The translations under genes were made by a program, and so were the position numbers. From Heteronotia binoei (Eukaryota): a stretch of 64,000 bases of DNA. The DNA is taken from positions 18,104,001 to 18,168,000 of the forward strand of contig NC_083235.1 of NCBI RefSeq assembly GCF_032191835.1, in the 5' to 3' direction. Shown here one piece after another: positions 2,991 through 52,536 of the stretch (the stretch's first letter is position 1; each line of letters starts with the position of its first letter). Under the pieces are notes generated by a model, which was not told the DNA's origin, ran no database searches, and worked only from the letters and a program-made list of their open reading frames with translations.

Positions 2991-2993
2991 TGG

Positions 2994-2997
2994 ACAT

Positions 2998-3044
<47 letters not shown>

Positions 3045-3085
3045 TTCATTCATTCATTCATTCATTCATTCATTCATTCATTTAT
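2994..3085. repeat. Compound microsatellite (TTTA)n(TTCA)n
   Basis: Seen directly; probably the tail of the minus-strand L2 at 3085-3400. Confidence 0.9.
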
Positions 3086-3400
3086 TTCCGCAGATTTATA
3101 GACCTCCCTTTCCCATAGTGAGCTCAGGACAGCTTCCAACATAATAAAACAATCAAAACAATTTAAAACAGTTAAAACAATTTAAAATTAAAGCAATTGA
3201 GCCACCGCTCACATTAAGGCGGCATGGATGGTATGTACAGGTCAGTGCAATCAGTGTAGGGGGACCAGTTTAGATGGTAAGGACGTCCGTCCACCTCAGC
3301 CATAGGCCTGGTGGAACAGCTCCATCTTACAGGCCCTCCAGAATGATAACAAATCCGAGAGGACCCAAACCTCCGTAGGGAGCTGATTCTCATGACCCAT
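3085..3400 (-). mobile_element. L2 LINE 3' end fragment
   Basis: Reverse strand resembles the L2 ORF2 end and 3' UTR, similar to 8436-8720. Confidence 0.6.
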
Positions 3401-3605
3401 GTTCCACTTTTTACAGAGGGAGAGAAATACATAAATACCATCAATGATTATATCTTAATGGCTTTACTTTGGAATCGAGTGATATTTTGTTTATTTTACT
3501 GAATGTTTTAGCCTGACTGGCACCACCCTGGGCTCTTAGTGGAAGGGAGGTGGTTTATAAATGCAAATTAAAATACATAAACAAGTAAGGCAGCTCTGTG
3601 TGTCA

Positions 3606-3776
3606 CCCTGACCTGGATAGCCAAGGCTAGCCCAATCTCATCTGATCTCAGAAGCTAAGCAGGGCTGTCCCTGGCTAATAGACCAGGATCATTATGTGGA
3701 AGCAGGCAATGGCCAACCATCTTTGAACATCTCTTGCCTTGAAAAAAGTCAATTGTGACTGGATGGCATTTCCACC
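3606..3776 (+). mobile_element. 5S rRNA-derived SINE with Sauria/BovB-like tail (5S-Sauria-like)
   Basis: cccaatctcatctgatctcagaagctaagcagggc matches the 5S rRNA internal promoter region, followed by a gcaggcaatggc...ctcttgccttgaaaa tail. Not a 5S gene. Confidence 0.75.
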
Positions 3777-4063
3777 ATGTGTCAGAATGACATCTGTATG
3801 ATATTAATGGATTCATATAGCATGTCAACATCTCTCAAGAAGCAATGTCCTTCATCTTTAAGTCTAATTTCCATACTAGACATTATGTTTTTTAAAAAAA
3901 GAACCCAGACCCTACTGACTCTCTCTGCTACCATACAACAGCTGTGAGAAATATCACTTTTAAAATGAAAACACAGTTTAGCTCAGAACGACTGCCATTT
4001 CCCCAAAATATCTTCTTGCATTTTTCAGCTGGGGCTACCTTTGCAACAGCAAAGAAAACAAGA

Positions 4064-4109
4064 ATGGCCAAAGCAGTATGCAGAAAGAGCATAGAAGAAC
4101 AGGGGCAAG
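4064..4109 (+). CDS. Predicted upstream coding mini-exon of OR-A (MAKAVCRKSIEEQGQ + G, phase 1)
   Basis: Acceptor tttttcAG at 4027-4028, Kozak agaATGG at 4064, donor CAAG|GTGAAA at 4110; joins in frame to the acceptor at 5121-5122; conserved in OR-C. Confidence 0.6.
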
Positions 4110-5127
4110 GTGAAAAAAATATTTAAAATATTTATTAAAGTGGAAAGTGGATAACTTTGGAGACAATCCCTTCACAAGGTGAATTACAAAATGTGTAGAG
4201 GTCCACAAAAACTTAATATTTTTTCATCTTGTACCTGTTCTGCATACTTTCAGCTGGGGCTACCTATGCCTGGTTATTTTAAAAAAGTTATCATCCAGTT
4301 TGCCCCTCCTTCAACATTCATGGGAGTCTACTTAAGTCAACATTCAATTATTCTTTTCCCTCCTGTGCTTGAAACAAAATTAACTTGATCAGCCTCCAGC
4401 ACAGGGTGACAACCTTATCCATCCTTGATGAAAAACATGGCATGATTTTCTTCACTGATCAGATGCAACAAGGAGCACGGATAAACTTTGCACCAATATT
4501 GTACAAACTAAAATATTCAATCACTAGCAAACAGTCAAAATAAAAGATGACAAGCATTTGAAACAAATCACCATGCTGTTATTATGTACTAAGATTTTAA
4601 AGTCTAATTGTATAATGTTAAAGAGTTTTACGTAATTTTATATTAATGTTAGGTATTCTTTCTGTCTTGTGATCATGATTATTGGTTTTCTTCTTTGCTG
4701 TTAATCTATATTGGTTTTTAATTATTTGTAATGTGTTTTGTATTAACTGGCTTGTTTTATCTTGAGCTTAAGATCATTGGTCAAAGAAGCTAATAAATAA
4801 ATAAATAAAAGGAAAGGAAACAAATTATCCAGATTCATCTGATTTCATCTGAAAGCAGATCTCCTTCCCACTGCAATTTAATTTTTTAAATTAATATGAG
4901 TTTGCTTTATCCAGAGTTGGGAAAACAGTGGATAAAATAAAATTCATTCAGTAAACTGGTACAATAGGAAGAGGTGTACAGTCTGTGCATAGTCGCTCTG
5001 CTCTGGGTCCAAGGTATTCATCTGATTGTCCATTTGGATATTTTACCCATGGATGCACAAATATGTTTGCAAGGCAGAATTTCATGCAGATATTACTATA
5101 GTTTTCCATTTCCCTTTTACAGGTAAT

Positions 5128-6057
5128 ATGGAAGATAATGGAACCACTGTGACTGAGTTTGTACTCATGGGCTTCCCCAGACAACTCCACATGCGCACTG
5201 TATTCTTTGTCTTCTTCTTAGCAATGTATGCCGTCACCATAGCTGGGAATGGTCTCATTGTATTGTTAATTGTGGTGGATTCTCATCTCCACACACCCAT
5301 GTATTTCTTCCTTAGCAACCTCTCCTTCATTGATGTCTGCTATGTCACTACCACTGTCCCACAGATTCTGGCCCTTGGCTTCAAAGAAAAGCCCACTATA
5401 CCTCTGGGCAGGTGTTTTGCACAAATGAGCATCAGCCTTTTTTTGGGAATGGCGGAGTGCCTCTTATTAGCTGTCATGGCTTATGACCGCTTTGTGGCAA
5501 TATGTAGCCCACTACACTATAACTTAATCATGAGCCAGAAGGTGTGCATCATGCTGGCAGTCAGCCTGTGGCTCAGCTCTTTCCTCTTGACCATTGTACC
5601 CTTTTTTAGCATGCCAGCCCGCTTGTGTGGCCACAATGTGGTGAATCATTTTTCATGTGAGCTCCAAGCAGTGTTGAAATTGGCTTGCTCTGACACTCAT
5701 GCCAATGGGCTTATCATGTTGATAACGAGTGTCTTCACACTTCTGTTCCCCTTTGCCTTCATCCTGCTGACCTATGGGCGCATTGGTCTAGCTGTCCTGC
5801 GCATCCGTTCGGTTGAAGGCCGAAGCAAAGCTTTATCTACTTGTGGCTCTCATTTGGCTGTCGTGGGCATCTTCTATGGCACCGCCATGGCTGCATACCT
5901 GAGGCCTCAGACCAAGACTTTCACAGACAGGGAAAAAGTAGTGTCTATCTTTTATGGGGTTGTGACCCCAATGCTCAACCCCTTGATATACAGCCTGAGG
6001 AACAGGGATGTGAAGGGAGCCTTTTGGAGGCTGATTGGGAGGGAAACAGAGAAGTAA
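5128..6057 (+). CDS. OR-A: intact class II olfactory receptor (OR2/OR13-like), 309 aa from ATG 5128; 326 aa if spliced to 4064-4109
   Basis: Motifs NGT glycosylation site, LHTPMYFFLSNLS, MAYDRFVAICSPLHY, KALSTCGSHL, PMLNPLIYSLRN; acceptor ttttacAG at 5121-5122; AATAAA at 6483-6488. Confidence 0.96.
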   Translation: MEDNGTTVTEFVLMGFPRQLHMRTVFFVFFLAMYAVTIAGNGLIVLLIVVDSHLHTPMYFFLSNLSFIDVCYVTTTVPQILALGFKEKPTIPLGRCFAQMSISLFLGMAECLLLAVMAYDRFVAICSPLHYNLIMSQKVCIMLAVSLWLSSFLLTIVPFFSMPARLCGHNVVNHFSCELQAVLKLACSDTHANGLIMLITSVFTLLFPFAFILLTYGRIGLAVLRIRSVEGRSKALSTCGSHLAVVGIFYGTAMAAYLRPQTKTFTDREKVVSIFYGVVTPMLNPLIYSLRNRDVKGAFWRLIGRETEK

Positions 6058-7918: not shown

Positions 7919-8435
7919 NNNNNNNNNNNNNNNNNNNNNNNNNNNNNNNNNNNNNNNNNNNNNNNNNNNNNNNNNNNNNNNNNNNNNNNNNNNNNNNNNN
8001 NNNNNNNNNNNNNNNNNNNNNNNNNNNNNNNNNNNNNNNNNNNNNNNNNNNNNTCCCCTGCCGAAGCAGGCTCAGGGCGGCTAACAATACGGTGCCCCAT
8101 GGTGCACCAACAATAAAACAGTTACATTGGAAACATTAAATTAAACATTAAATTAACCTTAAAAGCCTGAATTAAAACAATTAACTAAAACATATTATAA
8201 CGCTATCCTTGACACTCTTCTAGNNNNNNNNNNNNNNNNNNNNNNNNNNNNNNNNNNNNNNNNNNNNNNNNNNNNNNNNNNNNNNNNNNNNNNNNNNNNN
8301 NNNNNNNNNNNNNNNNNNNNNNNNNNNNNNNNNNNNNNNNNNNNNNNNNNNNNNNNNNNNNNNNNNNNNNNNNNNNNNNNNNNNNNNNNNNNNNNNNNNN
8401 NNNNNNNNNNNNNNNNNNNNNNNNNNNNNNNNNNN
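7919..8435. other. Assembly gaps (7919-8053 and 8224-8435) flanking a 170-bp island resembling an L2 tail
   Basis: N runs seen directly. Confidence 0.99.
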
Positions 8436-12175: not shown

Positions 12176-14030
12176 AGTCTTGATCAAAAGCTTAGTAAAT
12201 GTTTTGATGCGGAGCAAGAGACCAAGAAAGAGCTGCCAAGTTAGCTGCTAAGTTTCCCTGAAGCCAGGGCAGAAGGGCACAAGATCAGTGAACCCATTGG
12301 TTAGGCTATCGGGGTGCTAGCTCTCATCTACCTATAACAATTCATTATTAATAATCAGTTAAAATAATTAATGAAGCCTTCATTAATCCAGTTGTGGTGT
12401 TTAAGTCTTTCTTTTGTGGTAGGGGATCCATTAGTTTGCAATGCGGTCATGAAAAACAGATAAGTGCAAGTGTGCAAAATCGCTAAATATCATGTGTTGC
12501 TTTCTGCTCAAATTCGTGTTCGTTACATCAGTAATGCTGTCCAGTCATCTCAACTTTTGCTGTCCCCTTCTTCTTTTGCCTTCTGTCTTTCCCAGCATCA
12601 GGAACTTCTCCAGTGACTACTCCCTTCTCATTTGATGGTCAAAATATTCGAGCTTCAGCATCTGGCCTTCCAGGGAAATGTCAGGGTTCATTACCCTTAG
12701 GACTGACTGATTTGATCATCTTGCAGTCCAAGGGACTCTCAAGATTCTTCTCCAGCACCACTGCTCGAAAGCATTTATTCTTCTGCTCTAGGGCTTCCTT
12801 ATGGTCCAACTCTCACAGTCACAACAACTCACAAATACTGCCCCCCCCCCCTAAATTCACACAATCTTCATTGCTTTCAGATGGCCACCTAGCCTCTGTT
12901 TAAAAACCTCCACGGAAGTAAACCAGGGCTTCACACGCACAAACGCACACACACAAATAAAGATATTATACAATAATGATGTTAGCACCAGTCTTCTTAT
13001 CACCCTTAGAAGGAATGCACACAACATGGTCTTCTCAGATGAGCAGGCTGCCCAGAACTCTAACCAAATGAGTTGCCCATCAGTAATTAAGAAAACATAT
13101 TTCTCTTTGACATGTGAGCCAAAAAGCAGAAATGTATGCTAGTATGAATTCACTTTATTACTCTGTTATACACAGATGCACATAGCCACACATGAACAAA
13201 ACAAAACTAGGAAATAAAACCCAAAAGGTAGATGCAAAACAAAATACCGAATTATGAGGGGAAAGGAAATAAAGAATATGTTGACAGGGATGGTCACAAA
13301 CCAACTCACAAATGAAAAGTTCATTGTGAATTTCGGGCAGTTCATGGTTCATGAAGCAATGATTGCAAACTGAAGAGCTCGGCCCTCTTTTTTACATCTA
13401 GCTGGTTAATATTGAATCAATAAAAGGGGCTAATAAATGCTTCCATAAAGAAGTATGGGAGATGAGGTAACTATTGCATACTAACTTGTGTTTTTCAGAG
13501 CACTGTGAAAATAGGATTTACAGTCTCCAAAAATTTTTAAAGAATTCTAAATGTTTAAAGTAGTTAAAAAGTCAATTTGGGTAAACTGGTAATAAGACAG
13601 GCTACACAAACATTTTGTAATCTTAAATCTGCTCCTGATATTTCTGACAAGAGAAACTGTCTTTAACAAAATAGATAAATCACTGTGGTTTCTGTTTTTG
13701 CTTCCTCTCTCTGCTAAAAATAAGTAAATTAATATTAATGATACAGGAACTATATTTACCTTTTATGCTTATGTTAACTGCTAATATTGTTAAACCAATT
13801 AGTTAGCTTTTATTTTTAATGATGTTAAAATTAACCAGTCAGCTCTGTTTCAGAGTTGGTTCTTCTGCTTTTCTCATTTGTATGTACTTAAGATGAAAAG
13901 TTTAGATTTATATTATAAGCTACAGAATAGTTAAAAGTATATAACAAAATAAGTGGACTGTAAAGGGCTATAATGGGTAAAATTGTAAGGCTTTCAGGTA
14001 GAAAGAATTTGGTATTTTGTCTTGAGGTAT

Positions 14031-14758
14031 ATTTCGGCCCCTTAGGGCAAGGGCCACGTTTGCCTCCCCGGAAGAAGGGGAGGCCAACAAGCTTACCCGC
14101 CCATCCGGGGAGCTGGTGGGGGCGGAACGCCAGGGCTTGTAAGCCCTGGTTCCGCCCCAAACAATGCAGCTCCATTTCGGGTCTAGGCCCACCCTCCCAC
14201 CCTTTAATAGTACAGGCTTTGCCGGTCGCCGTGTTGTCGGGGCCAGCTAGGAATTTTTTCATCTCAATCGATTGGCCATGATTGGGGTGTTTTTCACCTA
14301 CCTTGTACTGTTTGGATTTTGGAGGTGGAATTATCTGGGTTTTAAGTTATTGCTCACTTGGCTGGAGTTGGCTAGGGCTTTTAAGAGCTTCGGTGAGCAC
14401 CCCTGGCTTACCCCATTTTGATGGGTAAGTGGTGGGCTGAAACGGCAGCTGGGCTGTACGGCTCTCTGCGGTAAGAGACTGCCACACGGTTCCCTCCTCT
14501 GTATGCACTAGTTTGTTTACGGCTGGGCATGGACAGGGAGGGCATTCACGCCAGGCAGGCCCAACATTAGCCATAGTGAATGGCTCAGGTTGGGGGCAGG
14601 GTGCTTCGCCATTACTGGACAGGGAAGGGTCATGGGTTTCCCTTGGCCTGTCCTGTTAGTTCAGTTTGCCCCATGCCGGTTGATGCAAGTTAATAAAGTG
14701 GTCCTGTTTATACCCAGATTATGTTTGTTGCCTCGTTATTCCGACTGGGGGGGGGGGC
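14031..14758 (+). mobile_element. Ngaro-related solo A-spacer-B terminal remnant (copy 1)
   Basis: Colinear with the reverse complement of 43051-43779: starts atttcggcccc, contains gtttgcctccccgga and taatagtacaggct...ccggtcgcc, ends cgttattccgactggggggggggc(aa). No ORFs. Confidence 0.75.
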
Positions 14759-15131
14759 AAATACTGCTTCTCTTTGTATTTTTGTTTATGTTTTTCTATT
14801 TTGTTTCCCTTCACTTTTTTGCTTCTGTAACCCTGCATTTCCTATCCTTTTTATATTCAAACTTAATAAAATTTTAAAACAAATTTCCACAAATTTTAAA
14901 GCAGTTTGTGGGGGTTTATGAAGAGCAGAAAATGGCAGTAAGCCATTTAAACCTCTGCTTTTTTGCTCTTTACAAAAACTGGGGTTAAAATTGCTCCAAG
15001 CCATTTAACCTCCAGCTTTCTCCTCCACACAAAAATGACCCCTAAGTAGGACGATTCCAGAACCCCATCCTGGTCTTGCAAAAGAGAATTTACTTGATAT
15101 ACTTTTCACTTTAAAAAAAATTAAGTGAATG

Positions 15132-15490
15132 CTCGCGCCAATGGGCTTAACATGTTGATAACGAGCGTCTTCACACTTCTGTTCCCCTTTGCCTTCATCC
15201 TGCTGACCTATGGGCGCATTGGTCTAGCTGTCCTGCACATTCACTCAGCTGAAGGCCGGGGCAAAGCTTTATCCACTTGTGGCTCTCATCTGGATTCCGT
15301 GGGCATCTTCTATAGCACCGCCATGGCTGCATACCTGAGGGCTCAGGACAAGACTTTCAGACAGGGAAAAAGTAGTGTCTATCTTTTATGGGTTGTGACC
15401 CCAATGCTCAACCCCTTCATCTACAGCCTGAGGAACAGGGATGTGAAGGGAGCCTTTTGGAGGCTGATTGGGAGGGAAACATAGAAGTAA
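15132..15490 (+). pseudogene. 5'-truncated OR pseudogene fragment (TM5 to end, OR-A type), copy 1
   Basis: Homology to OR-A starts at ctc..gccaatgggc; 2-nt deletion ttca(ca)gacagg frameshifts TM7; GAG>TAG near the end. Confidence 0.92.
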
Positions 15491-18400
15491 ACCACTTGTG
15501 GACTCATTGTCTATACCAAGGGTGGCCAAACATACTTCTCATAAGAGCCACACTGAATAAACCTCAGATGTTTGAGAGCCACAAAACATGAACATCAGAT
15601 GTTTGTGAGTCACAAGACAGGAAGGAAGGAGGGAGGAAGAGAGAGATGGAAAGAAAGGAACTTTAAGTTTAAATGCATTCTCCAAGCCACCAGCTGCCTT
15701 GGCTTGGAGGAGTGATTTAAAGAGAGAAATGCCTTCTACAAACTAACTGATGGGGCAGTGGGGGCTTCGAGAGCCACACAATATGCGTGAAATAGCCACA
15801 TGTGGCTCTCGAGCCACAGTTCAGCTACCCTGGTCTATACTGATATCCTCTTAGAATGAATATGTCTAGCCATGTTTCTGTGTGTGACTTTAATGAACAT
15901 GGTATGTTATTAATATCACGTTATCAGTGTACATTAATTTTTGCATAATAAATATATACATGAATGAAGCAGATAGGTTTCCTTCTTTTTCTTGGTTGAA
16001 AGGCAAAATCCAATTTGTTGTCAGTGCTTGCAATAACTTTGCTGACACTGAATTCAGAGGTATTGCAAGGGCAAAAGGTACCCTTTGGGGAGGAAGCAGG
16101 ATGTGTGTGTGTGCAGATGAACTCTGATTCATGAATTTCTGGCTTGGAGTGCATGCTCACAAGCCCTCTGCTTCTTCTCAAAAGGACTCAATGGGATCCT
16201 TTAAATGCTTTCAAGAAGAAGCGAGGATAGCACCCGCCCCTCTCCCTCCAGCAGGATCCAAAGGGCTCTCTAGATGACCAATGGGCTACATGCTCCCTGT
16301 CTATCAACTGAAGGACCCCTCACATCTTGCCGGAGGGGAGGGAGAGGAGCAGCCGCAGGTGGTCAGGGTTGGGGGCAGGACTTCTCCCCACATGACAGCC
16401 GACTGGAGGTGCATTGGAGCCCCCAACACCAGGGGAACCCCACTGGGAGTAGAAGGATGGTAATCCTAGGAAGGCCTAGGCCTCTGCCCTGTTGTTGGCT
16501 CTCCAGACGAACTGGCTGGCCACTGTGTGAGACAAGATGCTGGACTAGATGGCCCACTGGTCTGATCCAGCAGGGCTCTTCTGATGTCCTTATGAAGGCC
16601 TTGACCTTCAACACTTCATCATTCTGATGTTCTTATGGAGGCTTTGCCCTTCATCACTTTATCAAAGTGTTGGTCCTGTGTGAATTTCTGCTGATGGGAG
16701 GGGGGTTTCATGCCCTTCTCCCACTGAAGCCTTCCAGTTCCTCCCCTGTGTTCCTGGAGGTTCCCTGTCCATGAGGAAAAGTGCTGAAATGTTATTGGGA
16801 ATTATAATTCTAGGAGGGAAAGAAGATGAAGATAATAGCCTGATAATAACAATCTGGGGGTGGGGGGAGGGGGGAGAAGGCATGCTAAAAAAGGCATTTC
16901 AAGCCAGGAACTGGAGTAAATCCCTTTACCAACTTTTGGATTTTTAAGATATCTAAAGAAATGTTCTCATTAACTAGTTCAATCTGAAGTGATGCAACGT
17001 CAAGTTTACAATTTGAGCTTCTGCTCTCCTTGTCATGGCTAATTGTCTCCATGGGATGTTGTCTTCTGGGCTCCCAAAGACAATTATGATCTTCAGGATG
17101 GAATCTTTTAAAATGTTCATGGATAGACTATAACTGCTTTGGTGAAACCATTCTAGATTTTGCATGCTGCAATGAAAGAGAAGATAAAGTGAGTCATGAG
17201 GTATCTTCATTTTTTCAAATTCCAGAATATAAAACCCATTCACATTTTTTTCAGAACCTATTCTAGAGTGTTTGAGTTCATTCACAGTTGCATTGGATGG
17301 ATTTGCAAAAAAACTATTAACATTCCATGTTAGGAGTGGTCCTTGAAAGGGGATTAAATATTGAACCATGAGCAAAGGAGGTGTAGTTCCACTGAGCTAT
17401 ACTTTTTATTTTTTTCATGAGAAAGACGTTAAGCTATGGCCCAGTTTCTAGTGGAACATGAGAAAAGTGCAGCTGCATCCCTAACACCACCAGTCAAAAT
17501 GATCTGGTGGTAGGAGATCGGAAAGACTTTTGGCAATTAACCCAAAGAGGACAACACTAACCTTGACAGACTCTCAGGCAGCTTCGCATTGTTATGCTCT
17601 TAATTTGTGGATGTGAGACGGATTTAAGAGGTGTCATGTATTTGACGGAGACACCGATTCCCAGATCTTTGGTTATCATCGAATTCCTACTGTGGTTCTT
17701 ATTCCTCCATCTAATACATGACAACATACAGAGAAACTCGTACATTATCTTTTGGTATGAACCTTTCCCCCCCAGAAAATTATACAAACACTTGGGGATA
17801 ATAATCGAGTGTTTTGTGTCATATTCACTCTTGCTGAGATATGTTAACTAAACTTAATGGATATGAAGGAAACACTTTCTCCTCAGTTAGTTTTTAAAAA
17901 GTTGTTATAGAAGTATAAGGGGAGAGTGGACTTGGAGATACAAACCCATAGCTATACAGTTTTTTCCTTGGGAAGAAACCTCACTAAAGACAATGGGTCT
18001 TCTTTGTTTCCAGCAAGTGTGAGAAGGATCACAACACAAAATCCCATCTGCACCTCAAAGAAAACCCTGTTGAACTGAGCGGGACTTAAGTAAGATTGAA
18101 CGGCATCTATAGATTCAATGTAGAACTTCTAGTGTGGTTGGAAAATCATTATGTTAATGTTTGTATTATAGTGATGGAGAGTGGGAAGATTGAATGTTAT
18201 CACAAAAAAAGCATTCGGCAGGGGAAACAGTACAGATGTCTTTGAGGTTTATTAAATGAAACAAGATCTGTAATGTGGACTTCCATCGTGAACATCTGAA
18301 TGGCTTTGTCTCCAAACCAAGCTGCTACTTCAGTTGCATCTAGATCAAGCCCACGGCACTAGATGACTGGAAACGCCCATTGCTTGCACATAGATGATTA

Positions 18401-20283: not shown

Positions 20284-21225
20284 ATGGGGGACAGCAACAC
20301 GACTGAGGTGAACGAGTTCATCTTGCTTGGGATTTCCGATCACCCCAGGGCTCAGGTGGTGATGTTTGTGGTTTTTCTCATCTTCTACCTCCTCACACTA
20401 TTCGGTAACAGCCTTCTCATTGCCCTAATCATTCTGAGTCCCCTTCTTCACACACCAATGTATTTCTTTCTTTGCAACCTCTCCTTCTTGGACATGTTCT
20501 ACACCACCAGCAGCATTCCTCAGATGCTGATTAACTGTTTCTTCCGCCGACCCACCATATCCTATACCCGATGCATAATTGGGATGTATGTCAGTCTCTT
20601 TCTCGGCATAGCAGAGTGTTTCTTGCTGGCTGTCATGGCGTATGACCGCTTTGCCGCCGTATGCAACCCTTTGCATTACACTGTCATAATGAGTTGGAAA
20701 GTTTGTATCCAGTTGGCTGCCTCGACTTGGGGCAGTGCCATTGTGATGACTCTGATCCCTCGGTTGCTTCAACCCACTCAGTTTTGTGGACACAACATCA
20801 TCAACCACTTCACTTGTGAGCTACAGGCATTCCTCAAGCTGGCTTGCTCAGATACACGTGTGGCTGAGATTGTCATCATGACCAACAGCTTTATTGTCCT
20901 TGTTGCGCCCTTCAGTTTCATCTTGGTGACCTATGGGCGCATTGCCCAGGCTGTGATGCGCATGCACTCAGCCAAGGGACGAGGCAAGGCTTTTTCAACC
21001 TGTGGGTCCCATCTGGTGGTGGTCAGCATCTTCTATGGATCAGCCCTCTCCATGTACTTGCGGCCTCAAGGCAAAACCATCTCTGACCTTGACAAAATTG
21101 TCTCCCTGTTTTATGGAGCGGTGACCCCAATGCTCAACCCTTTGATTTACAGCTTTAGAAATAAAGATGTGAAAGGAGCCTTTTGGAGACTACTTGGGAA
21201 GAAAATGAAGACTTTGCCCTCCTAA
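20284..21225 (+). CDS. OR-B: intact class II olfactory receptor, 313 aa
   Basis: NTT glycosylation site, LHTPMYFFLCNLS, MAYDRF, KAFSTCGSHL, PMLNPLIYSFRN; acceptor tcttttacAG at 20259-20260; candidate upstream donor AAG|GTAAGC at 19777. Confidence 0.96.
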   Translation: MGDSNTTEVNEFILLGISDHPRAQVVMFVVFLIFYLLTLFGNSLLIALIILSPLLHTPMYFFLCNLSFLDMFYTTSSIPQMLINCFFRRPTISYTRCIIGMYVSLFLGIAECFLLAVMAYDRFAAVCNPLHYTVIMSWKVCIQLAASTWGSAIVMTLIPRLLQPTQFCGHNIINHFTCELQAFLKLACSDTRVAEIVIMTNSFIVLVAPFSFILVTYGRIAQAVMRMHSAKGRGKAFSTCGSHLVVVSIFYGSALSMYLRPQGKTISDLDKIVSLFYGAVTPMLNPLIYSFRNKDVKGAFWRLLGKKMKTLPS

Positions 21226-28700: not shown

Positions 28701-31504
28701 TGATTAACCAAAGGGGAAAGCACAGCCCAACCTATGAGTTCTGCAGTACTAGAACAAATTTCCACCTATTTCAGTATTCTGTTTCCAGTAGTGGCTAGCA
28801 AAAACTAACTTACCTTTTCAGGAAGGACAGAACCAGATAAAGACTTGGAAGCGATTGGATACACTTCAGAGATAAATTCAAAATTTTTGGAAGTGTCTGC
28901 TCCAGGGCTGGTGTCCAGATCTTCAGACCATGAGACTTTGTTACGTGTCATAGCTAATACTTATGGATAGATCCGTTCTATATGTTCTACACCCCTGTTA
29001 AAAATTATCCTCTTTCTCTGCTTCTGAAATTTCAGGAGTTCCTGTCAGAGAAGCTGATTTCCTTTTGCCCTAAGAGGGTACCAGCCTTGCTATCATAGAA
29101 TATTGGCCCTATTGTGGTTCTACAAGACTTGGGGTTTCCTTCCCCCTCCCGTACCCTTACAGCTATTCACATGAGTGTGTTCCACTACTGTATGAGTTTT
29201 TCTTTGACCTGGCACTTTGGTGCAAACTGTTGCAGGGATAGCGCTGTGGTGAAACTCCATCATAAAAGGACTGCAGAATGTTTCTGTCAATCTTCAAAAC
29301 CAACAAGGTCAGTGGTTTCGTTATAATAATCAAATGTCAACAGTATTTAGAAATAGACATCGAAAACATGTGAATATCCAGAGGAATCTTAGGATAGGGG
29401 GATGTAGTCAAATTGGACACTTTGGACTGTCTGATCCAAGTGCTGTGGAAAGAGACTTCATCTCTGCTCTTGGTGGATGCCTGTTTCTTCAGGTTGACCA
29501 GTGTGGGGAACAGCCTTAGAATCATAGAATTGGAAGGGACTTCCAGGGTCATCTAGTTCACCGTCCAACCCCATGCAAAATTCAGGAAATTCACAAATGC
29601 CTTTCCCACACACCCCCAGTGACACCTGCTCCGTGGCCAGACTCATGCCCAGTCTTGATCAAAAGCTTAGTAAATGTTTTGATGCGGAGCAAGAGACCAA
29701 GAAAGAGCTGCCAAGTTAGCTGCTAAGTTTCCCTGAAGCCAGGGCAGAAGGGCACAAGATCAGTGAACCCATTGGTTAGGCTATCGGGGTGCTAGCTCTC
29801 ATCTACCTATAACAATTCATTATTAATAATCAGTTAAAATAATTAATGAAGCCTTCATTAATCCAGTTGTGGTGTTTAAGTCTTTCTTTTGTGGTAGGGG
29901 ATCCATTAGTTTGCAATGCGGTCATGAAAAACAGATAAGTGCAAGTGTGCAAAATCGCTAAATATCATGTGTTGCTTTCTGCTCAAATTCGTGTTCGTTA
30001 CATCAGTAATGCTGTCCAGTCATCTCAACTTTTGCTGTCCCCTTCTTCTTTTGCCTTCTGTCTTTCCCAGCATCAGGAACTTCTCCAGTGACTACTCCCT
30101 TCTCATTTGATGGCCAAAATATTCGACCGTCAGCATCTGGCCTTCCAGGGAAATGTCAGGGTTCATTACCCTTAGGACTGACTGATTTGATCATCTTGCA
30201 GTCCAAGGGACTCTCAAGATTCTTCTCCAGCACCACTGCTCAAAAGCATCTATTCTTCTGCTCCAGGGCTTCCTTATGGTCCAACTCTCACAGTCACAAC
30301 AACTCACAAATACTGCCCCCCCCCCTAAATTCACACAATCTTCATTGCTTTCAGATGGCCACCTAGCCTCTGTTTAAAAACCTCCACGGAAGTAAACCAG
30401 GGCTTCACACGCACAAACGCACACACACAAATAAAGATATTATACAATAATGATGTTAGCACCAGTCTTCTTATCACCCTTAGAAGGAATGCACACAACA
30501 TGGTCTTCTCAGATGAGCAGGCTGCCCAGAACTCTAACCAAATGAGTTGCCCATCAGTAATTAAGAAAACATATTTCTCTTTGACATGTGAGCCAAAAAG
30601 CAGAAATGTATGCTAGTATGAATTCACTTTATTACTCTGTTATACACAGATGCACATAGCCACACATGAACAAAACAAAACTAGGAAATAAAACCCAAAA
30701 GGTAGATGCAAAACAAAATACCGAATTATGAGGGGAAAGGAAATAAAGAATATGTTGACAGGGATGGTCACAAACCAACTCACAAATGAAAAGTTCATTG
30801 TGAATTTCGGGCAGTTCATGGTTCATGAAGCAATGATTGCAAACTGAAGAGCTCGGCCCTCTTTTTTACATCTAGCTGGTTAATATTGAATCAATAAAAG
30901 GGGCTAATAAATGCTTCCATAAAGAAGTATGGGAGATGAGGTAACTATTGCATACTAACTTGTGTTTTTCAGAGCACTGTGAAAATAGGATTTACAGTCT
31001 CCAAAAATTTTTAAAGAATTCTAAATGTTTAAAGTAGTTAAAAAGTCAATTTGGGTAAACTGGTAATAAGACAGGCTACACAAACATTTTGTAATCTTAA
31101 ATCTGCTCCTGATATTTCTGACAAGAGAAACTGTCTTTAACAAAATAGATAAATCACTGTGGTTTCTGTTTTTGCTTCCTCTCTCTGCTAAAAATAAGTA
31201 AATTAATATTAATGATACAGGAACTATATTTACCTTTTATGCTTATGTTAACTGCTAATATTGTTAAACCAATTAGTTAGCTTTTATTTTTAATGATGTT
31301 AAAATTAACCAGTCAGCTCTGTTTCAGAGTTGGTTCTTCTGCTTTTCTCATTTGTATGTACTTAAGATGAAAAGTTTAGATTTATATTATAAGCTACAGA
31401 ATAGTTAAAAGTATATAACAAAATAAGTGGACTGTAAAGGGCTATAATGGGTAAAATTGTAAGGCTTTCAGGTAGAAAGAATTTGGTATTTTGTCTTGAG
31501 GTAT

Positions 31505-32231
31505 ATTTCGGCCCCTTAGGGCAAGGGCCACGTTTGCCTCCCCGGAAGAAGGGGAGGCCAACAAGCTTACCCGCCCATCCGGGGAGCTGGTGGGGGCGGA
31601 ACGCCAGGGCTTGTAAGCCCTGGTTCCGCCCCAAACAACGCAGCTCCATTTCGGGTCTAGGCCCACCCTCCCACCCTTTAATAGTACAGGCTTTGCCGGT
31701 CGCCGTGTTGTCGGGGCCAGCTAGGAATTTTTTCATCTCAATCGATTGGCCATGATTGGGGTGTTTTTCACCTACCTTGTACTGTTTGGATTTTGGAGGT
31801 GGAATTATCTGGGTTTTAAGTTATTGCTCACTTGGCTGGAGTTGGCTAGGGCTTTTAAGAGCTTCGGTGAGCACCCCTGGCTTACCCCATTTTGATGGGT
31901 AAGTGGTGGGCTGAAACGGCAGCTGGGCTGTACGGCTCTCTGCGGTAAGAGACTGCCACACGGTTCCCTCCTCTGTATGCACTAGTTTGTTTACGGCTGG
32001 GCATGGACAGGGAGGGCATTCACGCCAGGCAGGCCCAACATTAGCCATAGTGAATGGCTCAGGTTGGGGGCAGGGTGCTTCGCCATTACTGGACAGGGAA
32101 GGGTCATGGGTTTCCCTTGGCCTGTCCTGTTAGTTCAGTTTGCCCCATGCCGGTTGATGCAAGTTAATAAAGTGGTCCTGTTTATACCCAGATTATGTTT
32201 GTTGCCTCGTTATTCCGACTGGGGGGGGGGC
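31505..32231 (+). mobile_element. Ngaro-related solo A-spacer-B remnant (copy 3)
   Basis: Near-identical to copies 1 and 2; terminal G run one base shorter. Confidence 0.75.
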
Positions 32232-32604
32232 AAATACTGCTTCTCTTTGTATTTTTGTTTATGTTTTTCTATTTTGTTTCCCTTCACTTTTTTGCTTCTG
32301 TAACCCTGCATTTCCTATCCTTTTTATATTCAAACTTAATAAAATTTTAAAACAAATTTCCACAAATTTTAAAGCAGTTTGTGGGGGTTTATGAAGAGCA
32401 GAAAATGGCAGTAAGCCATTTAAACCTCTGCTTTTTTGCTCTTTACAAAAACTGGGGTTAAAATTGCTCCAAGCCATTTAACCTCCAGCTTTCTCCTCCA
32501 CACAAAAATGACCCCTAAGTAGGACGATTCCAGAACCCCATCCTGGTCTTGCAAAAGAGAATTTACTTGATATACTTTTCACTTTAAAAAAAATTAAGTG
32601 AATG

Positions 32605-32963
32605 CTCGCGCCAATGGGCTTAACATGTTGATAACGAGCGTCTTCACACTTCTGTTCCCCTTTGCCTTCATCCTGCTGACCTATGGGCGCATTGGTCTAG
32701 CTGTCCTGCACATTCACTCAGCTGAAGGCCGGGGCAAAGCTTTATCCACTTGTGGCTCTCATCTGGATTCCGTGGGCATCTTCTATAGCACCGCCATGGC
32801 TGCATACCTGAGGGCTCAGGACAAGACTTTCAGACAGGGAAAAAGTAGTGTCTATCTTTTATGGGTTGTGACCCCAATGCTCAACCCCTTCATCTACAGC
32901 CTGAGGAACAGGGATGTGAAGGGAGCCTTTTGGAGGCTGATTGGGAGGGAAACATAGAAGTAA
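32605..32963 (+). pseudogene. 5'-truncated OR pseudogene fragment, copy 3
   Basis: Same translation and lesions as copies 1 and 2. Confidence 0.92.
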
Positions 32964-35900
32964 ACCACTTGTGGACTCATTGTCTATACCAAGGGTGGCC
33001 AAACATACTTCTCATAAGAGCCACACTGAATAAACCTCAGATGTTTGAGAGCCACAAAACATGAACATCAGATGTTTGTGAGTCACAAGACAGGAAGGAA
33101 GGAGGGAGGAAGAGAGAGATGGAAAGAAAGGAACTTTAAGTTTAAATGCATTCTCCAAGCCACCAGCTGCCTTGGCTTGGAGGAGTGATTTAAAGAGAGA
33201 AATGCCTTCTACAAACTAACTGATGGGGCAGTGGGGGCTTCGAGAGCCACACAATATGCGTGAAATAGCCACATGTGGCTCTCGAGCCACAGTTCAGCTA
33301 CCCTGGTCTATACTGATATCCTCTTAGAATGAATATGTCTAGCCATGTTTCTGTGTGTGACTTCAATGAACATGGTATGTTATTAATATCACGTTATCAG
33401 TGTACATTAATTTTTGCATAATAAATATATACATGAATGAAGCAGATAGGTTTCCTTCTTTTTCTTGGTTGAAAGGCAAAATCCAATTTGTTGTCAGTGC
33501 TTGCAATAACTTTGCTGACACTGAATTCAGAGGTATTGCAAGGGCAAAAGGTACCCTTTGGGGAGGAAGCAGGATGTGTGTGTGTGCAGATGAACTCTGA
33601 TTCATGAATTTCTGGCTTGGAGTGCATGCTCACAAGCCCTCTGCTTCTTCTCAAAAGGACTCAATGGGATCCTTTAAATGCTTTCAAGAAGAAGCGAGGA
33701 TAGCACCCGCCCCTCTCCCTCCAGCAGGATCCAAAGGGCTCTCTAGATGACCAATGGGCTACATGCTCCCTGTCTATCAACTGAAGGACCCCTCACATCT
33801 TGCCGGAGGGGAGGGAGAGGAGCAGCCGCAGGTGGTCAGGGTTGGGGGCAGGACTTCTCCCCACATGACAGCCGACTGGAGGTGCATTGGAGCCCCCAAC
33901 ACCAGGGGAACCCCACTGGGAGTAGAAGGATGGTAATCCTAGGAAGGCCTAGGCCTCTGCCCTGTTGTTGGCTCTCCAGACGAACTGGCTGGCCACTGTG
34001 TGAGACAAGATGCTGGACTAGATGGCCCACTGGTCTGATCCAGCAGGGCTCTTCTGATGTCCTTATGAAGGCCTTGACCTTCAACACTTCATCATTCTGA
34101 TGTTCTTATGGAGGCTTTGCCCTTCATCACTTTATCAAAGTGTTGGTCCTGTGTGAATTTCTGCTGATGGGAGGGGGGTTTCATGCCCTTCTCCCACTGA
34201 AGCCTTCCAGTTCCTCCCCTGTGTTCCTGGAGGTTCCCTGTCCATGAGGAAAAGTGCTGAAATGTTATTGGGAATTATAATTCTAGGAGGGAAAGAAGAT
34301 GAAGATAATAGCCTGATAATAACAATCTGGGGGTGGGGGGAGGGGGGAGAAGGCATGCTAAAAAAGGCATTTCAAGCCAGGAACTGGAGTAAATCCCTTT
34401 ACCAACTTTTGGATTTTTAAGATATCTAAAGAAATGTTCTCATTAACTAGTTCAATCTGAAGTGATGCAACGTCAAGTTTACAATTTGAGCTTCTGCTCT
34501 CCTTGTCATGGCTAATTGTCTCCATGGGATGTTGTCTTCTGGGCTCCCAAAGACAATTATGATCTTCAGGATGGAATCTTTTAAAATGTTCATGGATAGA
34601 CTATAACTGCTTTGGTGAAACTGCTTTCATTTTTTTAAATTCCAGAATATAAAACCCATTCACATTTTTTTTCAGAACATATTCTAGAGTGTTTGAGTTC
34701 ATTCACAGTTGCATTGGAAGGATTTGCAAAAAAATATTAACATTCCAAGTTAGGACTGGTCCTTGAAAGGGGATTAAATATTGAACCATGAGCAAAGGAG
34801 GTGTAGTTCCACTGATCTATACTTTTTCATTTTTTCATGAGAAAGACATTAAGCTATGGCCCAGTGAGAAAAGTGCAGCTGCATCCCTAACACCACCAGT
34901 CAAAATGATCTGGTGGTAGGAGATTGGAAAGACTTTTGGCAATTAACCCAAAGAGGACAACACTAACCTTGACAGACTCTCAGGGAGCTTCGCATTGTTA
35001 TGCTCTTAATTTGTGGATGTGAGATCGATTTAAGAGGTGTCATGTATTTGATGGAAACACCGATTCCCAAATCTTTGGTTATCATCGAATTCCTAGTGTG
35101 GTTCTTATTCTTCCATCTAATACATGTCAACGTACAGAGAAACTCGTATATTCTCTTTTGGTATGAACCTTTCCCCCCAGAAAATTATAGCAAACACTTG
35201 GCGATAATAATCGAGTGTTTTGTGTCATATTCACTCCTGCTGAGAAATGTTAACTAAACTTAATGGATATGAAGGAAACATTTTCTCCTCAGCTAGTTTT
35301 TAAAAAGTTGTTATAGAAGTATGAGGAGAGAGTGGACTTGGAGACACAAACCAATAGCTATACAGTTTTTTCCTTGGGAAAAAGCCTCACTAAATACAGT
35401 GGGTTTTCTTTTTTTCCAGCAAGTGTGATCAGGATCACAACAGAAAATCCCATCTGCACCTCAAAGAAAACCCTGTTGAACTGAGAGGGACTTAAGTAAG
35501 ATTGAACGGCATCTATAGATTCAATGTAGAACTTCTAGTGTGGTTGGGAAATCATTACATTAATGTTTGTATTATAGTGATGGAGAGTGGAAAGACTGAA
35601 TGTTATCACAAAGAAAGCATTCAGCAGGGGAAACAGTACAAATGTCTTTGAGGTTTATTAAATGAAACAAGATCTGCAATGTGGACTTCCATCGTGAACA
35701 TCTGAATGGCTTTGTCTCCAAACCAAGCTGCTACTTCAGTTGCATCTAGATCAAGCCCACGGCACTAGATGACTGGAAACACCCATTGCTTGTACATAGA
35801 TGATTAACCAAAGGGGAAAGCACAGTCCAACCTTTGAGTTCTGCAGTACCAGACCAAATTTCCACCTATTTCAGTATTCTGTTTCCAGTAGTGGCCAGCA

Positions 35901-38336: not shown

Positions 38337-38561
38337 CTTAAGTCTAATTTGCAACTGAAATTTTATTTTTAAAGAGAACCCAAACTTGACTGACTCCTAG
38401 AACCACACAACAGCTGTGAGATATATCACTTTTAAAATAAGGGAGAACCTAATTTGACTCAGAACTGTGATGGAAGACCTTCCTCCCATGCCACCAATTT
38501 CTTAAGGCAAAATATCTCCCTGCATTTTTCAGCTGGAGCTACCAGCAGTGAAGAAACAAGA

Positions 38562-38607
38562 ATGGCTGCACCAGGAGGCAGAAAGAATGCAGAAGAACAG
38601 ATGCAAG
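38562..38607 (+). CDS. Predicted upstream coding mini-exon of OR-C (MAAPGGRKNAEEQMQ + G, phase 1)
   Basis: Acceptor tttttcAG at 38531-38532, Kozak agaATGG, donor CAAG|GTGAAT at 38608; in frame with the acceptor at 40318-40319. Confidence 0.6.
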
Positions 38608-38834
38608 GTGAATTTTTTATTATTATTAAAAATATTTATTAAGGTGGAAACTGGATAACTTTGGAAATGATCCCCTGACAAAGTGAATTGTGAAACATGT
38701 AGGGATCCAGAAGAACTTAATCAATATTTTTTCACCTTGCACCTGTTCTTCAAGATCCTTTCAGCTGGGGCTATCCATGCCTGGCTATTTTTTAAAAAGT
38801 ATCATCTAATTTGACTCCCGCTCTACATTCATTA

Positions 38835-39146
38835 GCGGTCCCGTGACGCAGAGTGGTAAAGCAGAAGTACTGAAGTACTGTGATCTGAATTCTCTGCTCA
38901 CGACCTGAGATTGATTCCGGCGGAAGCTGGATTCAGGTAGCCGGCCCAAGGTCGACTCAGCCTTCCATCCTTCCGAGGTCGGTAAAATGAGTACCCAGCT
39001 TGCTGGGGGGAAAGCGTAAAAGACTGGGGAAGGCAATGGCAAACCACCACGTAAAAAGTCTGCTGTGAAAACGTTGTGAAAGCAACATCACCCCAGAGTC
39101 GGAAACGACTGGTGCTTGCACAGGGGACCTCTCCTTTTTCCTTTTC
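38835..39146 (+). mobile_element. Full-length Sauria SINE
   Basis: tRNA-like head gtgacgcagagtggtaaag, core gactcagccttccatccttccgaggtcggtaaaatgagtacccagc, BovB-like tail; 12-bp TSD ctacattcatta (38823-38834, 39147-39158). Confidence 0.9.
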
Positions 39147-39226
39147 CTACATTCATTAAGTCTACTTAAGTCAACATTCAATTATTATTTTTTCTTCTGC
39201 GCTTGAAACAGAATTAACTTAATCAG

Positions 39227-39831
39227 AGGAAATGTGGAGAAATTGGAACTTTCAGTCACATGTGGTGGGATTGTCCCTTAGTGAAAAAATTCTGGATGCA
39301 GGTTGGCATAGAGATGACAAAGATTATGGGATGGAAAATAAGTATATCCAAAGCAATGGCAATTATTAATTTGGATGGTGTGGGATTAAGATTAAAAGAG
39401 GATAGTAAATGGATTAATTTGATGTTAGTAGCAGCAAGACAAGTGATAGCAAGGAATTGGAAAGAAGCTGAGGAATTGACAATTAATCACTGGAGGGATA
39501 GAATGAATAGTATAATTATTTTGGAGTATTTAACGATGAAGATACGAAGAATGAATGGATTAAAGGTTAGGGAACAGGAGGAGGGATGGTTTAGGAAGAT
39601 GGTGAGATATTTGGAAAAGTTTAAACAATTTAAGACGATTGGTTGGTTAATAAGAAAATGAATGGATAAGATGTTTAAATAGAGTGACGGAGTTGTATTT
39701 GGACGGAATGTTAATAGTTATAAATTTATGGAATATTATAATGTATCTATGGCCTGGGACTCTCACAGAGGTGGATTGGTGGTGGAATACATAACAATAA
39801 AAAATTTTATTAAAAAAAAAAAAAAAAAAAA
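39227..39831 (+). mobile_element. L1-clade LINE 3' end with poly(A)
   Basis: HMWWDCPLVKKFW and LVAARQVIARNWK are L1 ORF2 C-terminal cysteine-rich motifs; 20-nt poly(A) at 39812-39831; absent from the OR-A paralog. Confidence 0.85.
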
Positions 39832-40324
39832 CAATTTAATTCACCCTCAATGAAAAATGTTGTATGATTTTCTTCAATGATGCAATTGCAGAGTCAACAA
39901 AGAGCACATATAAACATTGTTCCAATATTGTACAAATTAAACTATTAGATCAGTGGAAAACACTCAAAATAAAAAGTGGCATATTTGAAACAAATTACTC
40001 ATTTTCATCTGAAAACAGATTTCCTTCCCACTGCAATTTAATTTCTTCTTTCTCCAGAGTTGCAGATAACTGTGGGTAAAATCAAATTCATTTAGTAAAG
40101 TATGGTAAGTTGTGAACTGGACCAATTTTGTGGTTGAGATTTAAAGGCATACAATATACATTGTGAGCATATTCAGTCCACTCTGGGTCCAACTCCACTC
40201 TGGGTCCAAGATATTTATCTGAATGTCCATTTGGACATTTAATCAAAGGATGCACTGACATGTTTACAAGATGGAATTTCATACAGATATTACTATGATT
40301 CTCCATTTCCCTTCTACAGGAAAC

Positions 40325-41260
40325 ATGGAAGACTGGGATAATGGAACCACTGTGACTGAGTTTGTACTCATGGGCTTTCCCAGACAGCTCCACATGCGCA
40401 TTGCAATGTTTGTCCTCTTCTTAGCCATGTATACAGTCACCATAGTTGGGAACGGTCTCGTTGTATTATTGATTGTGGTGGATTCTCATCTCCACACACC
40501 CATGTATTTCTTCCTTTGCAACCTCTCCTTTATCGATGTCTGCTATGTCTCTACCTATGTCCCACAGGTTCTGGCAGATAGCTTCAAAGACAAAGCTGTT
40601 ATACCTTGGGGTAGGTGTTCTGCACAAATGAGTGTCGGCCTTTTTCTGGGAGTGTCTGAATATCTCTTACTAGCTGTCATGGCTTATGACCGCTTTGTGG
40701 CCATATGCAGCCCATTGCACTATAATGTAATCATGAGCCAGAAGCTGTGCATCATACTGGCACTCGGCCTGTGGTGCGGCTCTTTCTTCTTGACCATTGT
40801 ATCCTTTTATAGCATGCTGGCACAGTTGTGTGGCCACAACACGGTAAATCATTTTACATGTGAGCTCCAAGCAGTGTTGAAATTCGCTTGCTCTGACACT
40901 AAAGCCAGTGGACTTAACATGCTGATAACGAGCGTCTTCACTCTTCTGTTCCCCTTTGCCTTCATCCTGCTGACCTATGGGCGCATTGGTCTGGCTGTCC
41001 TGCGCATCCGCTCAGCTGAAGGCCGGGGCAAAGCTTTATCCACCTGTGGCTCTCATCTGGTTGTCGTGAGCATCTTCTATGGCACTGCCATGGCCGCATT
41101 CCTGAGGCCTCAGGCCAAGACTTTCACAGATAGTGAAAAAATAGTGTCTATCTTTTATGGGATTGTGACCCCAATGCTCAACCCCTTGATCTACAGTCTG
41201 AGAAACAGAGATGTGAAGGGAGCCTTTTGGCGGCTGATCAGAAGGGAAACAGAGAAGTAA
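40325..41260 (+). CDS. OR-C: intact class II olfactory receptor, 311 aa from ATG 40325; 328 aa if spliced; paralog of OR-A
   Basis: All canonical OR motifs; acceptor cttctacAG at 40318-40319; AATAAA at 41405-41410. Confidence 0.96.
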   Translation: MEDWDNGTTVTEFVLMGFPRQLHMRIAMFVLFLAMYTVTIVGNGLVVLLIVVDSHLHTPMYFFLCNLSFIDVCYVSTYVPQVLADSFKDKAVIPWGRCSAQMSVGLFLGVSEYLLLAVMAYDRFVAICSPLHYNVIMSQKLCIILALGLWCGSFFLTIVSFYSMLAQLCGHNTVNHFTCELQAVLKFACSDTKASGLNMLITSVFTLLFPFAFILLTYGRIGLAVLRIRSAEGRGKALSTCGSHLVVVSIFYGTAMAAFLRPQAKTFTDSEKIVSIFYGIVTPMLNPLIYSLRNRDVKGAFWRLIRRETEK

Positions 41261-51603: not shown

Positions 51604-52536
51604 ATGGGGGATAGCAACACGTCCGAGGTGAACGAGTTCATCTTGCTTGGGATTTCCGATAACCCCAGGGCTCAGATGGTGATGTTTGTGGTTTTTCTCA
51701 TCTTCTACCTCCTCACACTATTCGGTAACAGCCTTCTCATTGCCCTAATCATTCTGAGTCCCCTTCTTCACACACCGATGTATTTCTTTCTTTGCAACCT
51801 CTCCTTCTTGGACATGTTCTACACCACCTGCAGCATTCCTCAGATGCTGATTAACTGTTTCATCCGCCGACCCACCATATCCTATACCCGATGCATAATT
51901 GTGATGTATGCCGGTCTCCTTCTCGGCATAGCAGAATGTTTCTTGCTGGCTGTCATGGCGTATGACCGCTTTAACGCCATATGCAACCCTTTGCATTACA
52001 CCGTCATAATGAGTTGGAAGGTGTGTATCCAGTTGGCCGCCTTATCTTGGGGCAGTGCCATTGTGATCGCTCTGATGCCTCGGCTGTTTCAACCCACTCA
52101 GTTTTGTGGCCACAACATCATCAACCACTTCACTTGTGAGCTTCAGTCGTTCTTCAAGCTGGCTTGCTCAGATATACATGTGGCTGAGATTGTCATCACG
52201 ACCAATGGCTTTATTGTCCTTGTTGTGCCCTTCAGTTTCATCTTGGTGACCTATGGGCGCATTGCCCAGGCTGTGATGCGCATGCACTCAGCCAAGGGAC
52301 GAGGCAAGGCTTTTTCAACCTGTGGGTCCCATCTGGTGGTGGTCAGCATCTTCTATGGATCAGCCTTCTCCATGTACTTGCGGCCTCAAGGCAAAACCAT
52401 CTCTGACCTTGACAAAATTGCCTCCCTGTTTTATGGAGTGGTGGCCCCAATGCTCAACCCTTTGATTTACAGCCTTAGAAATAAAGATGTGAAAGGAGCC
52501 TTTTGGAGAGTGCTTGGGAAGAAAATGCCTGAATGA
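51604..52536 (+). CDS. OR-D: intact class II olfactory receptor, 310 aa; paralog of OR-B
   Basis: All OR motifs; acceptor tattttacAG at 51579-51580; upstream donor AAG|GTAAGT at 50903; an 8-nt insertion at the C-terminus gives an earlier stop than in OR-B. Confidence 0.96.
   Translation: MGDSNTSEVNEFILLGISDNPRAQMVMFVVFLIFYLLTLFGNSLLIALIILSPLLHTPMYFFLCNLSFLDMFYTTCSIPQMLINCFIRRPTISYTRCIIVMYAGLLLGIAECFLLAVMAYDRFNAICNPLHYTVIMSWKVCIQLAALSWGSAIVIALMPRLFQPTQFCGHNIINHFTCELQSFFKLACSDIHVAEIVITTNGFIVLVVPFSFILVTYGRIAQAVMRMHSAKGRGKAFSTCGSHLVVVSIFYGSAFSMYLRPQGKTISDLDKIASLFYGVVAPMLNPLIYSLRNKDVKGAFWRVLGKKMPE

Follow-up and report, generated by a model that had tools for sequence, protein, structure and literature searches.

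A candidate alternative first coding exon of an olfactory receptor gene in Heteronotia binoei arose from a lineage-specific palindromic insertion and drifts neutrally

The window analysed here is a stretch of 64,000 nucleotides (nt) from the gecko Heteronotia binoei (RefSeq assembly GCF_032191835.1, contig NC_083235.1, positions 18,104,001 to 18,168,000 of the forward strand), interrupted by runs of N at 7919-8053 and 8224-8435. Its + strand carries four intact olfactory receptor (OR) genes, named here OR-A, OR-B, OR-C and OR-D, whose usual ATGs lie at 5128, 20284, 40325 and 51604, respectively. They form two subfamilies, one made of OR-A and OR-C and the other of OR-B and OR-D. A third copy of the first type, OR-C2, is found at another locus (L002) and its protein is 97% identical to that of OR-C. 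The present work concerns OR-C and a short exon upstream of it (the mini-exon), which may provide the receptor with an alternative N-terminus. The main exon of OR-C (exon 2; 40320..41260, + strand) starts five nt before the usual ATG and ends with the stop codon, encoding 311 amino acids (aa); that of OR-A extends over 5123..6057 (+ strand). The translation of 40325-41257 holds the motifs of the family, namely N-x-T in the N-terminal tail, MAYDRFVAIC, KALSTCGSHL and PMLNPLIYSLRN, and the top protein database matches of exon 2 are all labelled olfactory receptor 13H1-like. The full model discussed below matches the Pfam families 7tm_4 (E = 6e-47, residues 49-322) and 7tm_1 (E = 3.4e-41). OR-C is thus an intact vertebrate class II olfactory receptor gene, OR13H1-like, with a frame of about 310 aa.

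The mini-exon of OR-C occupies 38533..38607 (+ strand). Its 3' end is the donor CAAG/GTGAAT (the slash marks the splice site here and below), and its 5' end is putative, as drawn in the first-pass annotation of this DNA. The coding part (38562..38607, + strand) consists of an ATG, 14 further codons and one base, reads MAAPGGRKNAEEQMQ and ends with the G of a split Gly codon. It is followed by a phase 1 GT..AG intron of 1712 bp (38608..40319, + strand), which terminates in the acceptor TTCTACAG/G preceding 40320. The equivalent exon of OR-A lies at 4029..4109 (+ strand), with its ATG at 4064, 4064-4109 as coding part, the donor after 4109, an intron of 1013 bp and the acceptor before 5123. In both genes the coding part measures 46 nt (15 codons and one base), joins in phase 1 to G-N-M-E-D and begins in the same context, acaagaATGg, with A at -3 and G at +4. 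The spliced N-termini would read MAAPGGRKNAEEQMQ-G-N-MEDWDNGT in OR-C and MAKAVCRKSIEEQGQ-G-N-MEDNGT in OR-A. Between the two genes, the untranslated part of the mini-exon differs by two indels (5 nt and 1 nt) and the 46 coding nt by none. OR-C2 likewise has an intact mini-exon, with a single nonsynonymous change and an intron of 1137 bp; mini-exon, donor and acceptor of OR-C and OR-C2 are about 99% identical. The ATG, the phase, the open frame and the stretches R-K and E-E-Q are common to all three copies. The first-pass annotation had described the shared length, phase and start-codon context of the OR-A and OR-C exons, the retention of R-K and E-E-Q and the indels in the untranslated part, and all of its coordinates and numbers agree with the sequence.

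The spliced, in-frame model of OR-C proposed at the same time is coherent as well, and it is identical to a protein already present in RefSeq, XP_060109280.1 (P0122, 328 aa), which we found as the 328-aa member of the 90% cluster of the nearest match. The first 15 residues of this protein are the translation of the mini-exon, and residues 18-328 are the 311-aa translation of exon 2. The exact single-exon translations of OR-C (311 aa, and 329 aa from an upstream in-frame ATG described below) were not found in the protein collection searched.

An alignment (A1) of the upstream regions of OR-A, OR-C, OR-C2, two genes of Gekko japonicus and the H. binoei paralog P0008 reveals where the exon came from. 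The three copies, and only these, share an insertion, which extends over about 215 nt in OR-C (38544..38758, + strand) and 203 nt in OR-A (4045-4247, + strand). In OR-C, the ATG and the other coding bases of the mini-exon, its donor and the initial 151 nt of the intron all derive from this insertion. A direct repeat, TTTCAGCTGGGGCTACC, flanks the insert; its copies measure 15-17 nt in OR-C, and those of OR-A (4023-4044 and 4248-4269) are 22 nt long. In OR-C, the left copy (38527..38543, + strand; TTTCAGCTGG(A/G)GCTACC, repeat family D1) lies immediately before the insert and the right copy (38759..38775, + strand) immediately after it; the right copy also forms a second possible acceptor, CTTTCAG/CTGGGG. 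At the empty sites, in both Gekko genes, in P0008 and in Eublepharis macularius, the repeat is present once with nothing between, and a profile of the empty site matches one uninterrupted copy in E. macularius (L004 5203-5491). The insert of OR-A and OR-C thus shows a flanking target-site duplication together with an empty site in relatives. A BLAST search of the insert against the window and six further loci (about 150 kb) returned only OR-A, OR-C and OR-C2.

The protein tree has the topology (Gekko P0003,(OR-A,(OR-C,OR-C2))), with supports of 99/96 and 100/93. Taken with the empty sites, it indicates that a single insertion on the branch leading to the Heteronotia clade explains the pattern of presence. 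The alternative, an ancestral exon with losses in the other lineages, was rejected, as this tree would then require at least four independent precise deletions. The synonymous distances between OR-A and OR-C (0.284), OR-A and Gekko (0.28) and OR-C and Gekko (0.275) are about equal, and both the insertion and the subsequent duplication thus came soon after the Gekko-Heteronotia split. In the same comparisons the stem of OR-C and OR-C2 has a length of 0.15, about double that of the OR-A branch (0.071). The nonsynonymous distance from Gekko is larger in OR-C (0.089) than in OR-A (0.058), the synonymous distances being equal; these values suggest that the protein has evolved faster in the OR-C lineage.

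The insert is an imperfect palindrome. In its left arm (38578..38643, + strand; inverted repeats I1 and I2) lie codons 6-15 together with the 5' splice site, and its right arm (38716..38765, + strand) abuts the right direct repeat. The arms are 83-94% complementary, internal to the insert and asymmetric. We also considered whether the left arm could be an inverted copy of the old polypyrimidine-acceptor region; by eye, the resemblance is weak. The predicted RNA fold of the OR-C insert has a free energy of -58.2 kcal/mol (z = -4.2), with 0 of 200 shuffled sequences as stable; the equivalent fold of OR-A has z = -3.3. With the 5' splice site placed in a hairpin of about 50 bp, RNA structure could in principle control whether the receptor carries a new N-terminal peptide of 17 residues. 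Such a switch, kept since approximately the Gekko/Heteronotia split, might tune receptor output or surface delivery, but we consider this scenario very unlikely.

The first-pass annotation had regarded the conservation of the frame in two diverged paralogs as the strongest evidence that the extension is translated, and had suggested a possible effect on trafficking. This line of reasoning does not hold. OR-A and OR-C inherited the exon from one insertion and are therefore not independent witnesses of frame conservation. Moreover, the 46 coding nt differ at 12 positions between the two genes; at 73.9% identity, they are the least similar of the reliably aligned segments around the gene, compared with 86% for the upstream block, 86% for the untranslated part of the exon, 82-87% for parts of the intron and 88% for exon 2. 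Estimated by the Nei-Gojobori method, the ratio of nonsynonymous to synonymous substitution rates (dN/dS) is 1.17 for the mini-exon, a very small sample of 15 codons, and 0.31 for exon 2, with dS of about 0.29 in both. The differences in the mini-exon amount to 10 nonsynonymous and 2 synonymous after Nei-Gojobori path averaging (11 and 1 by direct codon count), and they are spread over codon positions 1, 2 and 3 as 5/5/2; the corresponding figures for exon 2 are 40/19/51. In these 15 upstream codons purifying selection is thus not apparent, and dN/dS between OR-A and OR-C reveals no constraint on the amino acids. Neither the initiator Met nor the junction is conserved in the orthologues of other species (two genes in G. 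japonicus, and E. macularius), and the same applies to H. binoei P0008. The noncoding flanks of OR-A and OR-C have accumulated 23 indels over 675 aligned nt (0.034 per nt). When neutral evolution was simulated with this indel rate and the local substitution rate of 16-26%, the ATG, the phase and the open frame survived jointly in 10-17% of the runs. The frame pattern is therefore real but statistically unremarkable, and compatible with drift.

These data bear directly on the proposal that the extension is a functional N-terminal peptide under selection, acting for instance in membrane insertion or trafficking. It is true that the ATG, the phase, the open frame, R-K and E-E-Q are kept in the three copies, and that not one indel has entered the 46 coding nt despite the indel rate of the flanks. 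However, 7 of the 15 residues differ between OR-A and OR-C, and no other segment near the exon has diverged as much. The preserved R-K and E-E-Q sit in the purine-rich arm of the palindrome, and such stretches need no coding explanation. The exon is absent from the other geckos examined. A signal peptide was rejected for want of a hydrophobic core in the extension, and we found nothing in favour of a role in trafficking. We therefore regard a selected peptide as highly improbable.

On balance, we favour the view that OR-C is an intact OR13H1-like receptor gene with an alternative, lineage-specific first coding exon, the encoded N-terminal extension of which drifts neutrally. After the split from Gekko and before the duplication that produced OR-A and OR-C, a palindromic segment of about 205-215 nt, flanked by a direct repeat of 16-22 nt, was inserted directly 3' of an older, conserved polypyrimidine-CAG site upstream of the gene. 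With it came a usable donor (CAAG/GTGAA) and an ATG whose context is strong (A at -3, G at +4). Joined to the older acceptor that lies five nt 5' of the usual start codon, this donor gives a splice that by chance is in frame (phase 1). Transcripts that include the exon would start translation at the upstream ATG and add 17 residues to the extracellular tail of the receptor. At most, selection would act on the openness of the frame, leaving the residues themselves unconstrained. Such weak, frame-only selection is plausible because an upstream ATG out of frame and in strong context would lower receptor synthesis. The data above show the anatomy of the gene, the origin of the exon by insertion, its neutral drift and the identity with the RefSeq model; from there we infer that the junction is probably used in olfactory neurons and the upstream ATG probably translated.

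Several observations weigh against this reading. First, RefSeq handles three nearly identical cases differently: the model of OR-C uses the mini-exon, that of OR-A another exon and that of OR-C2 neither. The OR-A protein XP_060109279.1 (P0002) begins M-D-G-N-MEDNGT and is otherwise identical to the OR-A translation. Its coding start lies at 3224..3230 (+ strand; ATGGATG/GTATGT, the sole match to this pattern in the window), and position 3230 is joined to the homologous acceptor at 5123, bypassing the OR-A mini-exon. The OR-C2 model begins at the usual ATG despite its intact mini-exon. Second, the donor is predicted to lie inside a long stem, which could hinder its use. Third, at the putative acceptor of the mini-exon itself (the CAG before 38533, invariant in the Gekkonidae sequences), Eublepharis reads TTTTTAATCTGGGG, with no AG. 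Fourth, the inserted DNA has neither a poly(A) tract nor terminal inverted repeats, and no other copies in the window and the six loci.

The differing RefSeq models could indicate a prediction artefact, in which the 38607/40320 splice is never made and the RefSeq model of OR-C is an ab initio extension. The donor is moderate (GTGAAT or GTGAAA) and paired in the hairpin, and the sequence pattern taken by itself fits neutral drift. Conversely, an ab initio rule should treat OR-C and OR-C2, about 99% identical, alike; that they are modelled differently suggests that locus-specific evidence shaped the RefSeq models. The acceptor is also strongly conserved. An artefact therefore seems to us improbable. 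A less drastic possibility is that the mini-exon is an occasional exon of the 5' untranslated region (5'UTR), or is mostly skipped, and that most OR-C protein is made from the usual ATG at 40325, from transcripts that skip the mini-exon or begin nearer the coding exon. The upstream ATG would then be incidental and of no importance, though in frame. Splicing from 3230 to 5123 past the mini-exon in the OR-A model, the usual start of the OR-C2 model, the predicted burial of the donor in a stem and the neutral evolution of the peptide are all in line with this possibility, as is the frequency of in-frame upstream ATGs among mammalian ORs (13.6% in human and 21.5% in mouse; Barnes et al., 2020). 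Nevertheless, the RefSeq coding sequence of OR-C does include the mini-exon and, given the strong context of both upstream ATGs, transcripts containing the exon should initiate there. We judge this explanation rather unlikely.

An alternative first coding exon, the reading preferred here, would rely on splice signals that are partly older than the insertion. The 75 nt ahead of the usual ATG, with the acceptor YTTTTACAG/GAAAY-ATG among them, are kept in eight of the nine A/C-type gecko genes compared, the exception being Sphaerodactylus, which has a shifted AG. An acceptor of similar sequence, TTTTACAG/G, occurs in OR-B and OR-D, but 23 nt before the ATG. This conservation indicates that an intron ending just 5' of the start codon is old in this receptor family; the upstream exons that feed the old acceptor look changeable. 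Upstream of the mini-exon, a conserved block (38400..38532, + strand) ends in a polypyrimidine tract and CAG and is 81% identical to G. japonicus L001 8219-8358. The block may serve as acceptor for the mini-exon, or else be a promoter-proximal element. An nhmmer profile of this block matches the two Gekko genes, H. binoei P0008 and Eublepharis L004 5203-5491, and no counterpart was detected in Sphaerodactylus (L003) or at Eublepharis P0019 (L006). Within it, TTTCAGCT is invariant in six sequences of Gekkonidae. The region of the right direct repeat (38759-38800 in OR-C, 4248-4290 in OR-A) contains the acceptor-like CTTTCAG/CTGGGG followed by a short upstream open reading frame (ORF; ATGCCTGG...). 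The ATG of this short ORF is also found in the uninterrupted Gekko sequences, so that an older 5' exon may have carried a short upstream ORF.

Conservation over gecko families is strong in the final 75 nt of the intron and exceeds that of a normal polypyrimidine tract. This stretch contains an in-frame ATG located 54 nt 5' of the usual start (MEF[HNQ].D...FP.TGN; window 40271-40324, L001 9948-10000 and L006 6001-6054). In OR-C this extension (40271..40324, + strand) reads MEFHTDITMILHFPSTGN and opens an ORF spanning 40271-41260. The -54 ATG is retained in the two Gekko genes, in Eublepharis P0012 and P0019 and in Euleptes P0005, and is lost in OR-A; several RefSeq models from Euleptes and Eublepharis begin at it. 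It would offer an alternative start to unspliced transcripts or to transcripts beginning within the intron.

The growth of the intron from 1013 bp in OR-A to 1712 bp in OR-C had been attributed to the arrival of a short interspersed element (SINE) and an L1. Both blocks are indeed specific to OR-C in comparison with OR-A, but the OR-A intron has grown as well, through a 268-bp insertion of its own (4575-4842). As each intron carries its own insertions, both must have expanded from an ancestor of about 750 bp. The first block of OR-C (38833-39148, + strand, 316 bp) is SINE-like, of the tRNA type by eye; it may be a Sauria SINE. It has no counterpart in the OR-A intron and is shared with OR-C2 (L002 9078-9383). 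The second block (39227-39849, + strand, 623 bp) is present in OR-C and absent from both OR-A and OR-C2. It includes an open frame (39230-39658) with a C-x7-H-x4-C motif and a run of A at about 39810-39832, and on the strength of this motif and poly(A) tail it may be the 3' fragment of an L1-like element. A Pfam search of the frame 39230-39658 gave no match, nor did an Rfam scan of 38400-40400.

The RefSeq coding start of OR-A sits in another insertion, which is specific to OR-A (about 2993-3400), opens with a (TTTA)n/(TTCA)n microsatellite and has no counterpart upstream of OR-C. This start would be an exonised fragment of a repeat. At a larger scale, the array appears as a repeated unit of two genes, an A/C-type gene followed by a B/D-type gene, which occurs at least three times: 5128-6057 with 20284-21225, 40325-41260 with 51604-52536 (both on the + strand of the window), and L002 10001-10936 with 14575-15507. 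The spacing within these units is about 15, 11 and 4.6 kb, respectively. In addition, a segment of 4.6 kb is present in two copies of 99.8% identity (12525-17148 and 30000-34621), surrounded by matches of 92-98%, and contains 3' gene fragments of the OR-A/OR-C type (about 15137-15497 and 32610-33065). This pair inside the OR array points to a very recent segmental duplication or to a duplication in the assembly.

The gene model of OR-C is plausible and already annotated; what is new is the birth of its first exon from a palindromic insertion and the neutral drift of this exon thereafter. No primary paper on the H. binoei genome and its RNA sequencing (RNA-seq) emerged from our literature search. 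If the junction is used, OR-C represents a datable case of an olfactory receptor gaining a new N-terminus, in which an insertion beside old splice signals happened to supply an in-frame start. It also shows that N-terminal extensions of ORs can be lineage-specific and neutral instead of conserved. For annotation, this implies that a comparison of paralogs is by itself insufficient to call in-frame upstream starts of OR genes functional.

The exonisation of inserted DNA, by which transposable elements or local rearrangements give rise to new exons, is one known process that OR-C resembles: a new donor and a new ATG came from a repeat-flanked insert and are combined with older splice sites. The OR insert differs in being an internal palindrome, devoid of recognisable transposon hallmarks and without other copies in the roughly 150 kb searched. 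A second parallel is offered by the in-frame upstream ATGs in the 5'UTRs of ORs (Barnes et al., 2020), which share with OR-C an upstream start in frame and added residues of no apparent importance. By contrast, the 46-nt coding part of the mini-exon is open in OR-A, OR-C and OR-C2, and for OR-C RefSeq places the start there. The closest parallel is with the 13 human and 41 mouse ORs whose coding sequence is divided between two exons, in most cases within the N-terminal tail (Barnes et al., 2020, BMC Genomics 21:196, PMC7055050). Some of these loci form a second class that also makes a single-exon isoform. OR-C has the same split layout: a short upstream exon holds the initiator Met, and the frame continues across a GT-AG intron situated in the extracellular N-terminal tail. 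As in the second class, the usual ATG is retained, which allows two N-termini whose lengths differ by a few to about 30 residues. The mammalian cases were required to have RNA-seq models and a Met and junction conserved across species, whereas OR-C is known from its sequence and a RefSeq model, and the corresponding genes of Gekko and Eublepharis, orthologous or co-orthologous, lack its exon. If the OR-C junction is indeed used, the gene agrees with the observation in mammals that some ORs have a coding region of more than one exon, and extends this observation to squamates.

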